Part shown: positions 23,196-27,220 of the stretch, piece after piece
Numbering within the stretch: the stretch's first letter is position 1
Layout of the letters: the number at the start of each line of letters is the position of its first letter
NCBI RefSeq assembly: GCF_000315625.1
Contig: NW_005434430.1
Span: 1 to 43,586, forward strand
Source of the DNA: Guillardia theta CCMP2712
Taxonomy: Eukaryota > Protista > Cryptophyta
Direction of reading: 5' to 3'
Length of the DNA: 43,586 nt
Translations under genes and position numbers: made by a program
Notes under the pieces: model-generated
The model's input: only the letters and a program-made list of their open reading frames with translations
Databases searched by the model: none
Told to the model about the DNA's origin: nothing

Positions 23196-24063
23196 GTTGT
23201 TCCTGATCGACCTAGAAGGACAAACAAGACATTAGCAAATACCATATCGGGGGTATTGAGAGGAATCTGACAAAAAAAAACCAACAGTGCGGGCTCGAGG
23301 TAAGCTAGCAAGAAGATCGGTTTTCATCCTGATCCTACAGATTCGAACTCGATTTGCTGTCATAAGGAAGGGTCCAAGTCTTTGGTCTACTTCTGCTTGT
23401 GAATTCACCAGTCATCCCTCTCATGACAGTTCTTAAGCTATTTCTTTTCTCAATCTTGATCATCGTCACCGTGCAATTTATCGTAGAAGTTTGTCTGTCA
23501 ACCTTCTACTTTCATCTCACGTCTGGAATCTGCTTTGTTCCATGCATTCCTCGCGTTCATGCTGCCATACTACCGAAAGCAAGAGCATGAGCATGGATAC
23601 CGAGGAAAGCTCTTCTTCCCTCTCCGTGCATCCTCCCCGCAATTCACACAAGAAACATTTTCCACCCCACCGCTTCTGTACCCTACCCCTACCGCATCCT
23701 ATTAGTTGAAGAGGAATGAACCGGTACTAGAAAGGATCTGTACCACCCGTCATGGAATGCTCCCTTACAAGAAAACGTTTTTGAGATTAAAAAAAGTCCG
23801 ACCCGTACCCCTAGCAAGACCATAGGTACACAGGGGTAGGTTTATATTCGCTCTTTCAAGAGAAGGTAGGGTGTTCAAGAAATATTGAAGCGGTGGGTAT
23901 AAATCGTGATGTTTCAGATGGTGGGGGTAGTGGCTTCGGGGGTGGGGGTCATGTCACAACAATGGGGCTCTAATATAACTTGGGGAATAAAAACTTGGGG
24001 AACAATCAGATCAGATCACCCCCACCCACCCCCACTAGGGGTTTTACGGATGTCCCCAAATGT

Positions 24064-24222
24064 CATTTAATAGATAAACGCCACGAATCTATCTACCACG
24101 GGTACTCTCCCTCATGATGTGACGGAATATGTGAATACCCTTCTGAACGACGAACTAAGTTTTCGCACAGAACTGCCGTCGTATGATTGAGAGCCGCGAC
24201 TCTCCGTCATACAACGGCAGTT
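24064..24222 (-). ncRNA. Putative Fanzor omegaRNA scaffold
   Basis: Long hairpin at 24171-24222, stem 24133-24140/24100-24107 and hairpin 24071-24095. Each contains G-U pairs on the minus strand that are A-C mismatches on the plus strand. Lies between the stop codon and the element end. Confidence 0.7.
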
Positions 24223-24435
24223 GTTTTTTTTGCCAAATTGTCTTCGGATGTTGTTGGAGCCTTACATGAATCCTACCAAATGATGCCAGTCAGTCACTTC
24301 AATGATCACATGTCGTAAACATCGGATCATAATGGAGGCAGGCACCGGGCAGGCAGGCAGGCAGGGAATTAGGCATCGAGTCCCGAGGGACGCAGTCTGG
24401 GTAGGGAGGGGGCGACAACAATCATTGAATTCACC

Positions 24436-26499
24436 TCAGGGGCGACGTAGGTGATTCGGTCTTTCAGGAAACACATTGAAACAAGTGAGTATATTCAGTG
24501 CAGCATTCAAGTCCCTGGATTTGATCGGCTTTCCTTTACAGCTGTCACGATAACAGTTAGATGAAAAGGTGAATTACAGGAGTATACAAAACTTGACATT
24601 ACCTCGATGATCTGCAAAATTTCAATCCTCGTACTTCACTTTTCCTTGTTTTCAACCTACAGGTCTCGTCTGGTTCTTTCCCTGTATTTTCAATCCGTCG
24701 AAGCACATCGAGCTCAGAACCACAATCGTTACAGCACTTGGTAGTACGGTATTCGTCAACATCTACGACTCTGTAGTGATTCTCGAATCTTCTTCTTATC
24801 CACCTGACCGGTACAGGCCTTTCTCCTCGACGTCCTGTAGACGGGAACCTTGCATTTCCATATGCGATAACAGGTTCTATTTCTCCCTTTCCTTTCATTG
24901 TACGGATAAACCTGTCGACTGACTTTCGTTTCGAAATGTAGATGTCGAATTTCATCCTGGCGTATTTTCGCTTTGAATAATGCGAAGTTAACTCCTCCCA
25001 ATGACTTGTAACTGCAAGAAGATAGTCTTCGAATCTTGATAGACTGCCGCCAGACTTACTCGAGAACCCCTTGAGATAGTGTAATGTCGATTGAATATCT
25101 TGATCCCACGTCTTTCTTTTCTTTTTATTGCGATTCAGATGTGACTCGTGATAATATTGTTTTCTCGAAAACTGAAATCTTTTTCTGATTATTTGTTGAT
25201 CATCTCTGAATTGTTCGACGGCCGATATAATGACGCTCCTCCCAGGGTCGATCGCAATTACCCTTGGGCAATTTTTACATTCTTCGATCTCTCTTTGGTA
25301 TTCTGAATTTTCATGTAATACTTTGTATGATATTGATATCTTCTTCGCCGATTTCCGTTCAGCCCTTTTTCTATCGGCAAGCCATTTGGTAGTGCGCAAT
25401 GAAGGTTCCTGTTCGAGTCCATCGATTGTTTTGACAATTAACGTGAAGCGAAAACAAACCGATACACCGTCTGTCGTGATACTTGTAATCTCCTCTCTCT
25501 GATCTCTGAACAGATTCGAACAGTCGAAAATCCTTCTGAAATTCTTAGAGTTCTCCAAAGTTTGATCTATTCTCATGAACGATTTTTTATCTTCTCCCGG
25601 TTTCAAACTGTTCGCTTCTTTCAAAATGTAATACATCACATCATTATCGATTGTTAGATGTTTTCTGCCGAATTTCGACATTGGTGCTGCCTTGAATGTT
25701 TTTTTCGAGAGACCACGATCTTCGACAAGAACTTCAACATGAACATGTGTGTCTCGATTATCTCAAACAGATTTTTCTGCAACCTATGATCAAATTTGTC
25801 ATATTTGAAACTAAAAAGATCTTCGTCCCCCGATAATCCAATTAGTTGTTTCATATGGTCGATGAAGGTTCCTATCTGCTGTGAATTATTCCTGTTAAAC
25901 ACTTCTGTCTTCAACTCGTAATCTTTCCTTTGAAACAATACATTCTTCACGTCTTCGATTTCTTGCTGATGGTTAATATGTAACTCTCCTTTGCAGAATT
26001 CGGCAATGAACTTTTCCAATCGGTTTGTAAAATTTGCTTTCAGGTCTTGGTAGAAATTCGTTCCATATTGATTTGCAGCGAATACAATAGCTTGCGAGTC
26101 TCCTCGAATTCTACATAAATCAACGAAAAGATGTCTTTTCTCTGACCAGAAACGTTGTAGAGTTGGATACTTGTTATCTGTACGGCTATGTTGTTCCATT
26201 CCAAGTGTAAAAACATTCCAGAAAAAGGTCGATTTGGCTCTCTTGATTTCATCCACTACATATCGTAAATTCCCTGTATCCCTGCCCCATATCAGAAAAC
26301 AGTTGAATATCATACTGCCTCTTGATGTGATCTGACTGATATGTAATACCCATCTGTCGATCACGTCTAAAATCGATCTGTTCTCTACCTTGAGTCTCGA
26401 GTATAACCCACATTTGACGACTCTCGTGAATGGTTTTGAATAACTTATTTCTTGACCGTTGTCTGAATCATCTGTAATTCGTTTTCTCTTCCTCGGCAT
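24436..26499 (-). CDS. Fanzor1: Fanzor1 (eukaryotic TnpB-like RNA-guided DNA endonuclease), ~667 aa reconstructed; frameshift at 25699-25705, intron 24542-24602
   Basis: NLS MPRKRKR. RuvC-I VIAIDPG (Asp 25249-25247). IAYGNARF, then VDEYRTTKCCNDC (Glu 24754-24752 plus a Zn-finger half). RGLKFCRSS/SC. After splicing, RuvC-III SRDLNAALNI (Asp 24513-24511) and terminal ERPNHLRRP*. Confidence 0.92.
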
Positions 26500-26747
26500 G
26501 TTATAGTATGTTAGTCTGGCGAAACCATGTTAGATAGCAGGTAGTCACTACATTTTTTTCATTACCATCGTTTCAGTGTATTGTCGGACCGCAAACTCTG
26601 TAATGGCGGGAAGATGAAACGAGCAGCCACAAACTTTCCGTCGGACTCCGGGAAGGCGGGAAGATTTTTTTTTCTTTTTTAAGACCCTCATACAGCCCCA
26701 TTGGATGGGTGATTGAAACCTATCAATGACCCCTGTCATGCTGGTCC

Positions 26748-26767
26748 AGGACTCCTTCGGGAGTCCT
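26748..26767. other. Perfect subterminal hairpin AGGACTCC-TTCG-GGAGTCCT at the Fanzor left end
   Basis: 8-bp perfect stem overlapping the inner edge of the inferred terminal repeat. Confidence 0.85.
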
Positions 26768-27220
26768 TTTGTCGATTAAAGGTTAAGCCAGTCACTGAGT
26801 GACTTTCCTGCCGGCCCCGCCGGGCGGCCCGACTGTCAAGCCAGTTTGACGGTGACCGTCTGACTCGGAATGAAGATGCAGGTGGCAGTCAAAACCATGT
26901 AGCGACGCCAAAGTCAAATGCAACAACTTCCAATCATGCTCAAGGTGAAGACCACAGATATTCAATGCTGGCTTAATCGCTTCTGCAGTGCTATTCACTG
27001 CTGACATGCTCGTGTTTTGTGTTATGGTGTCCTTACATGTCATCTGATACTTTACAAGGTGCATCGAGAACAACATGCGAGGCTCGCCCTGCTCGCGTTG
27101 TTGGCGGCTAGACAGGGAGGAGCTTTGTGTGTACAATGGCATGGAGCTCATCGTCGCAGATCGAGGGGGGCAGGGGCAGATGCACCTGATGGCGGATGAG
27201 AAGAGGTGGGAACGTTGCAG

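Follow-up and report, generated by a model that had tools for sequence, protein, structure and literature searches.

The window analysed here is the whole stretch of 43,586 nt from Guillardia theta CCMP2712, and it contains a mobile element that carries a gene of the Fanzor1 type on the minus strand. The RNA-guided nuclease activity of Fanzors was established in 2023, and their role in eukaryotic genomes is a current question. An earlier note, made from the sequence alone, had described a complete locus in which two AT-rich minus-strand open reading frames (ORFs) and a hidden last exon make up a protein of about 667 residues. Both ORFs (26499..25654 and 25681..24599) and the exon (24541–24436) are found, in a region with a GC content of 38–46% compared with a genome background of about 55%. 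The word complete is true of the element family but not of the window copy, which is frameshifted. The gene has the following parts.

26499..25654, minus strand: ORF1, 281 residues, beginning with MPRKRKR
25681..24599, minus strand: ORF2, 360 residues, holding IAIDPG, AYGNARF, VDEYRTTKCCNDC and RGLKFC
24603..26499, minus strand: exon 1 of the Fanzor1 gene, which in intact copies holds residues 1–631 and 2 nt more; frame disrupted in the window copy
25725..25727, minus strand: 2-bp insertion TG/GT (ttct[TG]tcgaag), its placement ambiguous within tTGt; shifts the frame by −1; window copy only
24542..24602, minus strand: spliceosomal intron of 61 nt (GTAATG..GACAG), from the sequence and the joint in RNA-derived contigs
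24436..24541, minus strand: exon 2, from the sequence, with the fourth zinc-finger Cys, the RuvC-III RD, the C-terminal RPNHLRRP and a TGA stop

Gene structure and the encoded protein

ORF2 lies in the −1 frame relative to ORF1, and in the window copy the zinc finger and RuvC-III fall downstream of the frameshift. An alignment of seven full-length copies has the extra TG in the window copy only; the six others lack it and their frame is continuous. The two bases at 25725 are also left out in collapsed contigs of the sequencing runs X1, X2 and X9. Such contigs are unable to reveal a variant of a single copy, so that the TG is without independent confirmation. The window copy is a pseudogene or an assembly error and not a complete gene.

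It is improbable that the window copy is functional, either because the TG is an assembly error or because ribosomes shift by −1 at the A AAA AAA run in the ORF overlap (25712–25706). The relative frame of the two ORFs would suit such a shift, as would the perfect X_XXY_YYZ heptamer about 13 nt downstream of the insertion and before the stop of ORF1, and the collapsed contigs, in which a variant of one copy does not show, give no independent confirmation of the TG. However, the siblings without TG read through the run in one frame, the family needs no frameshifting, and what one would ordinarily assume is a single indel in this copy. A programmed −1 frameshift at the A7 run as the means of joining the ORFs was rejected, because six siblings have a single frame there and the 2-bp insertion occurs in the window only.

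An intact spliced ORF of 666 residues is present in four sibling copies (contigs C111, C87, C29 and C23). The predicted length thus holds for these, whereas the window copy requires repair of the 2-bp insertion. Of about 11 long copies, seven have lost the frame through small insertions, deletions within the gene or gaps in the assembly. Those on contigs C40, C57 and C30 (loci L002, L004 and L005) contain scattered, non-templated GC-rich insertions, mostly of 4 bp (CACG, CCAT, GCCA, GCCG, CTGC). Each of these is confined to one copy and several disrupt the ORF; in appearance they resemble scars of end joining or footprints that another element has left.

The 61-nt intron follows ...TCATCGAG, where it splits the zinc finger and parts RuvC-III from the rest of the protein. 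Exon 2 reads SCKGKPIKSRDLNAALNILTCFNVFPERPNHLRRP / SCKGKPIKSRDLNAALNIL...RPNHLRRP and ends with the stop codon at 24436–24438. All motifs listed in the earlier note (PRKRKR, IAIDPG, AYGNARF, VDEYRTTKCCNDC, RGLKFC, RDLNAALNI and RPxxLRR) can be read in the sequence, the last of them as RPNHLRRP. PRKRKR, residues 2–7, is a putative nuclear localization signal. The RuvC triad comprises D417 (IAIDPG, in RVIAIDPGR; codon 25249–25247), E582 (VDEYRTTKC; codon 24754–24752) and, after splicing, D642 (SRDLNAALNIL; codon 24513–24511, all on the minus strand). This triad had been called intact, which applies to the four intact siblings, but the window copy encodes no intact nuclease.

The zinc finger is of the CCCC type, with CCNDC (in TTKCCNDC) and FCRSSSC followed by the RuvC-III RD. 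In Fanzors, the RuvC-II Glu is displaced next to the zinc finger (PMC13565253, PMC10530073). Since E582 stands six residues before the first zinc-finger Cys (C588), its placement corresponds to this rearrangement, as the earlier note had argued. In a family alignment of 62 sequences D417, G547, P563 and E582 are invariant, and conservation of the RuvC-III R and D is 90% or higher. G547, which lies in IAYGNA, likely marks the canonical RuvC-II position.

A phmmer search against the Protein Data Bank (PDB) gave SpuFz1, the Fanzor1 of Spizellomyces punctatus (PDB 8GKH, 9CEU–9CEZ), as the sole match (E 1.2e-6). D417 aligns to IDPN (VVIDPN) and E582 to DEYKTS of SpuFz1, which correspond to the metal ligands D383/N385 and E541, respectively. 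The AlphaFold2 model covers residues 1–631, the last 35 residues being absent, with a mean predicted local distance difference test score of 84.6 and a predicted template-modelling (TM) score of 0.85. The structure search on which the earlier note had made its assignment depend returned Fanzor1 entries first: the top seven Foldseek matches in the PDB are all Fanzor1 (E 1e-19 to 4e-15, TM 0.54–0.67), in the order SpuFz (best E 1e-19 with TM 0.63; range of TM 0.62–0.67), PpFz and GtFz (E 1.3e-15, 9cer). The last is GtFz1, the Fanzor1 described earlier from G. theta (FZID83, GUITHDRAFT_101477, PDB 9cer, 690 residues; Saito et al. 2023, PMC10432273). Cas12h, Cas12f and TnpB match only at E 5e-4 and weaker. 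Among 1.84 billion cluster representatives, HMMER found 1408 relatives at E≤1e-3, of which 41 reach E≤1e-30; the nearest relative, with 36% identity, was transcribed in the cryptophyte Hanusia phi. The NCBIfam scan gave no match. Membership in Fanzor1 is supported by the motifs, the 62-sequence family alignment and the predicted fold, which resembles that of solved Fanzor1 structures (WED, REC, RuvC and NUC).

Element ends, copies and target sites

The gene occupies most of a repeated element, whose boundaries are listed below.

24071..26782, minus strand: non-autonomous mobile element of 2712 nt with the Fanzor1 gene; at least 14 copies exist, with 95–100% identity; ends set by junction alignment
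26783..26786, minus strand: 5′ target-site duplication (TSD) TTAA, candidate target-adjacent motif (TAM); matching 4-mers at both element ends
24067..24070, minus strand: 3′ TSD TTAA, from the junction alignment of copies
26749..26766, minus strand: subterminal 5′ hairpin GGACTCC-CGAA-GGAGTCC, from the sequence; kept in all full-length copies

Copies were searched for in the same genome (Guillardia theta CCMP2712, 87.1 Mb in 669 contigs). At least eight long copies with 97–100% identity were found in addition to fragments; for the 3′ tail by itself there are 14 matches with ≥95% identity. The copies from which the earlier note had wished to define the ends number at least 14, the window copy included. 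The span common to the copies is 24066–26786, close to the proposed limits of 24064–26786, and the element proper is 24071–26782. In the DNA-like run X9, the depth of the element is about ten times that of its flanks. The Fanzor1 element family in the nuclear genome of G. theta is young, and very young at that because its copies are 97–100% identical.

An identical 4-mer is present on both sides in nine of 11 two-ended copies (TTAA in six, TTAT in three). The target is thus truly duplicated over 4 bp at TTAW, which in most cases stands in the context C-TTAW-A. Longer flank repeats were looked for at full-length copies and none was found. There is no inverted repeat of ≥11 nt linking the two element ends; symmetry of the ends by eye is weak (8/13, TAA.CG.CA). 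A profile search revealed several related Fanzor1 families in G. theta, among them the abundant sister family A, i.e. the C78 group (C78, C26, C14 and C72), in which the symmetry is 11/16. The terminal 14-mer GTGKCGTTTAKCTA of the 3′ end is common to sister family A and has 39 occurrences in the genome, compared with three for a control.

Inside the element there is no other ORF of more than about 100 residues and hence no transposase, as had been stated before. The element is non-autonomous because a second ORF is missing. Its multiple copies, the missing transposase and the TTAA/TTAT duplications bear out the proposal that the gene is carried by a non-autonomous transposon. The AT-rich TSD of 4 bp, seen as TTAA or TTAT in 9/11 copies, is a trait of piggyBac/Kolobok/Sola-type transposons. 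The genome contains ten or more ORFs of 250–800 residues for piggyBac-like transposases (PF13843; C1:917360, C21:234111, C181:11687 and others), which are candidates for TTAA-specific transposases acting in trans. None of them adjoins the terminal motif, and no piggyBac partner could be linked to the element. Helitron2 elements have a 5′ hairpin, asymmetric terminal inverted repeats and, at full length, no TSD, a combination that does not apply here. Hairpins are found near both ends, but a complement of the 5′ terminus was not seen in the 3′ subterminal region, and a 4-bp TSD flanks the full-length copies.

Some copies have unusual flanks. Four of them (L005:4216-4290, L007 on the minus strand after 1501, L055:2922-3182 and L056:2775-2922) have one common 3′ flank from TTAA onward, GTGGATTCCTAAACCTAAACC..., which contains telomere-like CCTAAA units. 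Their 5′ flanks are unlike, the 4-mers are mismatched in three of the four, and two of the four are metagenome contigs of the European Nucleotide Archive (ENA). A composite or 3′-transducing variant is possible, as is repeated insertion beside a repeat. The C40 copy has the 11-mer ACACCTAAAGT on both sides (L002:1475-1504 and L002:4221-4240), the 5′ one 2 nt upstream of TTAA and the 3′ one directly after TTAA. A simple 4-bp TSD model has no explanation for this duplication. Elsewhere in the window, the segment 15001–17000 consists of one kilobase at 24% GC, followed by a kilobase with a GC skew of +0.65 and an AT skew of +0.38.

Transcripts and the 3′ non-coding tail

Downstream of the stop codon the element continues with a tail, which is the candidate source of the guide RNA (omegaRNA).

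24071..24435, minus strand: 3′ non-coding tail, candidate omegaRNA region, 365 nt, with a hairpin at 24171–24222 and a terminal stem-loop at about 24071–24097
24273..24434, minus strand: intron of 162 nt in the 3′ untranslated region, starting 2 nt past the stop; joint 24271 to 24434 (cut +1), CT..AC on the plus strand
24047..24066, minus strand: host DNA just past the 3′ TTAA, predicted native guide ATGACATTTGGGGACATCCG, by analogy with the Fanzor/TnpB architecture (PMC10432273)

Transcripts of the Fanzor1 gene exist, and they are spliced on the sense strand. The joint of the 61-nt intron (24541 to 24603, CT..AC on the plus strand) occurs in RNA-derived contigs of run X1 and that of the 162-nt intron in contigs of X1 and X2; both are absent from the DNA run X9. 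In a separate RNA-seq run, all 100 of 100 reads over 24708–26121 have their first mate on the plus strand, in a library whose strandedness is not established. Removal of the 162-nt intron takes away the beginning of the candidate omegaRNA region and with it a hairpin block that diverged copies have kept. Competition of splicing with guide-RNA production has been reported for bacterial IStrons, and the two might compete here in the same way.

The 365-nt tail folds better than shuffled sequences (z-score of the minimum free energy −2.94) and contains a perfect long hairpin with 26-nt arms at 24171–24222. A diverged copy (C1) and a ghost locus (C6) retain its last ~45 nt as well as one hairpin block in the interior. 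Changes in the terminal stem keep pairing only when G-U pairs are counted. RNAalifold on five 3′ tails gave two compensatory pairs and a covariation term of +0.32, with little power as only three lineages are represented. Rfam has no match in 23900–26900 at E≤1. One RNA-derived contig extends from 24274 past the element end into the flank of another copy. In the junction alignment, the host stretch 24047–24066 varies from copy to copy, and the tail of the window copy is identical to the sibling tails. In solved Fanzor1 complexes, the 3′ TSD forms part of the omegaRNA scaffold (PMC13565253). To judge from these sequence features, the 3′ tail is a plausible source of omegaRNA.

The C6 ghost locus (L028:9052-9209, ~622550–622708) consists of a 3′ tail that has diverged but keeps the conserved hairpin block and the terminal stem-loop, and it ends with TTAA. 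No Fanzor ORF is present in ~9 kb upstream and 0.7 kb downstream of this tail. A third variant of the terminal motif, GTGTCGTTTATCTA, was observed at six more loci (C41:540677, C47:582898, C47:588368, C134:168486, C318:3508 and C319:19622), two of which lie 5.5 kb apart on C47. These loci could be another family or an autonomous partner.

Truncated copies, a possible homing cycle and known systems

Many profile matches cover the C-terminal part alone, i.e. there is an excess of 3′ ends. One copy of sister family A is poly-G-truncated. Eleven 5′-truncated copies, drawn from the window family and sister family A, were examined. Six of these are flanked by direct repeats of 5, 7, 9, 10, 13 and 14 bp. 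Each repeat opens with the target 4-mer directly after the 3′ end and stops at the truncation junction or within 2 nt of it. The repeats thus consist of a TAM-like 4-mer and the first 1–10 bases of the 3′ flank. In 110 control pairs of mismatched flanks, no match is longer than 7, and none reaches 9. At four of the six junctions, there is microhomology of 3–5 nt with the element interior. Insertion of truncated copies at guide-matched ectopic sites is unsupported, as the 3′ flanks of truncated and donor copies share only TTAAA(C/G).

The repeats may tentatively be regarded as in vivo scars, left when Fanzor cut the vacated site inside the protospacer, the element was copied inward from the filled chromosome on one side only and the left end was joined by microhomology. 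The left end keeps TTAA plus up to ten bases of the right flank; therefore, the cut would have been made in an already vacated site and downstream of the TAM. A transposase break would not account for this, because it would leave a left end finishing at TTAA. GtFz1 cuts after bases 14–17 (PMC10432273). Judged from the 11 cases, the cut position deduced here would fit where Fanzor1 cuts.

Alternatively, the truncated copies may have arisen by one-ended rolling-circle transposition of the Helitron2 type, starting at the 3′ end, and would then not be scars of repair. The same pattern of 5′ truncation, intact 3′ ends and TSDs of 7–19 bp in length, located downstream of the target tetranucleotide, has been published for Fanzor1 elements classed with Helitron2 (PMC3627910), and the hairpins near both ends and the lack of clear inverted repeats agree with it. 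However, the full-length copies have a fixed 4-bp duplication with a fourth base that co-varies on both sides, which is not a Helitron trait, and no asymmetric terminal inverted repeat is visible by eye. In addition, the microhomology at 4/6 junctions points to end joining, and all repeats are ≤14 bp and thus within the cutting distance of GtFz1 (after bases 14–17). One-ended transposition is therefore considered quite unlikely as the origin of these copies.

As a whole, the locus is best explained as a member of a young G. theta Fanzor1 transposon family with an inferred nuclease homing cycle; the probability of this explanation is put at about 75%. In such a cycle, protein from the four intact siblings would bind omegaRNA for which every copy supplies a 3′ tail as the template, perhaps even the broken window copy. 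The RNA would end with the element terminus and UUAA and would run on into host DNA, which serves as the guide. The complex would recognise a TTAA-type TAM and cut its own insertion site where this has been vacated and lacks the element; in repair, the element would be copied back with the sister or homologous chromosome as the template (restorative homing). Truncated copies would result where the right-hand break end copies the element inward from the filled chromosome while the left end joins by microhomology. New insertions would be made by a separate transposase in trans, plausibly one of those that leave a 4-bp TSD, e.g. piggyBac or Sola.

Several observations weigh against this explanation. 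The RNA-seq run has no reads over 24066–24700 and leaves the 3′ tail uncovered. Antisense spliced transcripts exist over the Fanzor ORF. Four GT..AG introns on the plus strand (24485–24541, 24872–24939, 25008–25245 and 25297–25361) are seen in RNA-like contigs, and that at 24872–24939 is also seen in about eight raw RNA-seq reads (one joint read and seven loose-end reads). Silencing, exonisation at another copy and noise are candidates for the role of these transcripts. The protein scores 14.8 bits with Pfam PF07282 (Cas12f1-like TNB / OrfB_Zn_ribbon), under the cut-off of 26.3 bits. This miss is a limit of sensitivity and not an exclusion, because GtFz1 itself remains below the cut-off with 23.4 bits. 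No PF13843 ORF lies near any of the 39 matches of the terminal motif; Sola and Kolobok transposases were not searched for. The copies differ by 13 nonsynonymous and 11 synonymous changes, which is weak evidence of constraint. The scars at truncated copies could stem from another process, e.g. one-ended transposition. Finally, human cells were not edited by GtFz1, and CrFNuc-1, the Fanzor1 of Chlamydomonas, did not cleave in vitro. Because of these two cases, an intact triad is no guarantee of activity.

The family might instead be a decaying or catalytically silent Fanzor relic that is spread by a trans-acting transposase only and whose nuclease no longer cuts. The breakage of seven of ~11 long copies by small insertions, deletions or gaps would be in line with this, as would the published inactivity of GtFz1 (human cells) and CrFNuc-1 (in vitro) and a raw-count ratio of nonsynonymous to synonymous changes near 1. 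Yet four copies retain the full 666-residue frame with all catalytic and zinc-binding residues, the copies are 97–100% identical in a very young family, the gene is spliced in the sense direction, and the TAM-anchored scars suggest cutting downstream of TTAA. A relic is thus unlikely, and a family with a homing nuclease is the preferred explanation.

For the window itself the result is modest, since the kind of element is known and the copy in it is frameshifted. Fanzor1 as a kind of system and G. theta as a Fanzor species are known; the separate family and the TAM-anchored repeats at truncated copies are new. If the repeats are indeed scars, they would be the first genomic evidence of restorative homing by a eukaryotic Fanzor1 and would re-explain the 'one-ended transposition with variable TSDs' of Chlamydomonas Fanzor1 elements (2013). 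They also give a checkable prediction of the position at which the enzyme cuts. With four intact genes, many RNA-only or broken loci and a clear TTAA/TTAT target, the family is suited to asking if Fanzor promotes retention of its element. For tool builders, it offers a compact orthologue of 666 residues with ~16% identity to SpuFz1 and a predicted TTAA-type TAM.

The closest comparison by host is GtFz1. Its loci were reported without inverted repeats or transposases, and another role was considered for loci of this type by Saito et al. (PMC10432273). Likewise, the window element has neither a clear inverted repeat nor an associated transposase. Both proteins have the Fanzor1 fold, and the measured GtFz1 TAM, 5′-TTAAN (PMC10432273), matches the TTAA/TTAT target duplication found here. 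The published GtFz1 omegaRNA scaffold (PMC10432273 supplement) matches contig C7 at 896451, which is the published scaffold_7 coordinate. Identity of the two was rejected, because BLASTP gives a single local match of 51 residues (35% identity) and the RNA sequence of the 3′ tail is unrelated. In the phmmer search against the PDB, 9cer is missed. Furthermore, there are two GtFz1 loci but at least 14 copies of the window family, which has an intron before RuvC-III. The window family is, by its sequences, separate and very divergent from GtFz1 within the same host species; it shares the same culturable alga and is younger and more numerous. Peptides of its protein were not found in the accessible part of the supplements of Saito et al. 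2023 (PMC10432273), and Guillardia is unmentioned in the Fanzor surveys Bao and Jurka 2013, Jiang 2023 (main text) and Yoon 2023.

SpuFz1 is the best structural match (TM 0.62–0.67 over ~630 columns) and the only sequence match in the PDB, with aligned catalytic D/E positions. Both SpuFz1 and the window family are multi-copy and have loci that may supply RNA without protein. SpuFz1 differs in that sequence identity is 16%, that it has 30-nt inverted repeats and a CATA TAM, and that its N385 is replaced by Gly (IDPG) in the window-family protein.

Within G. theta, sister family A belongs to the same clade (29% identity in the C72 member, E 8e-74). It shares the MPRKRK N-terminus, the 3′-terminal motif GTGKCGTTTAKCTA, 4-bp duplications and truncated copies with TAM-anchored repeats. 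In contrast to the window family, the ORF of the C72 member is intronless and encodes 639 residues, the target is ATAN and not TTAW (ATAN duplication in four of six copies) and the 5′ region has an internal tandem repeat array.

The Chlamydomonas reinhardtii elements CRe-1/2/3 (Bao and Jurka 2013, PMC3627910) are likewise transposase-less algal elements with an intron-containing Fanzor1 gene. They also show an excess of 5′-truncated copies with intact 3′ ends and repeats of variable length that start after the target tetranucleotide, a pattern which was read as one-ended rolling-circle transposition (PMC3627910). However, CRe ends are common with Helitron2, and full-length insertion occurs after TTTT without duplication, compared with the 4-bp TTAW duplication here. 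The homing of IS200/IS605 elements by TnpB and omegaRNA resembles the proposed cycle in its 3′-flank guide, in the TAM being the target motif and in cutting of the vacated site, which restores the element. Those systems are bacterial, have a TnpA Y1 transposase, no TSD and a canonical RuvC-II Glu, whereas homing of the G. theta element is deduced from scars alone.

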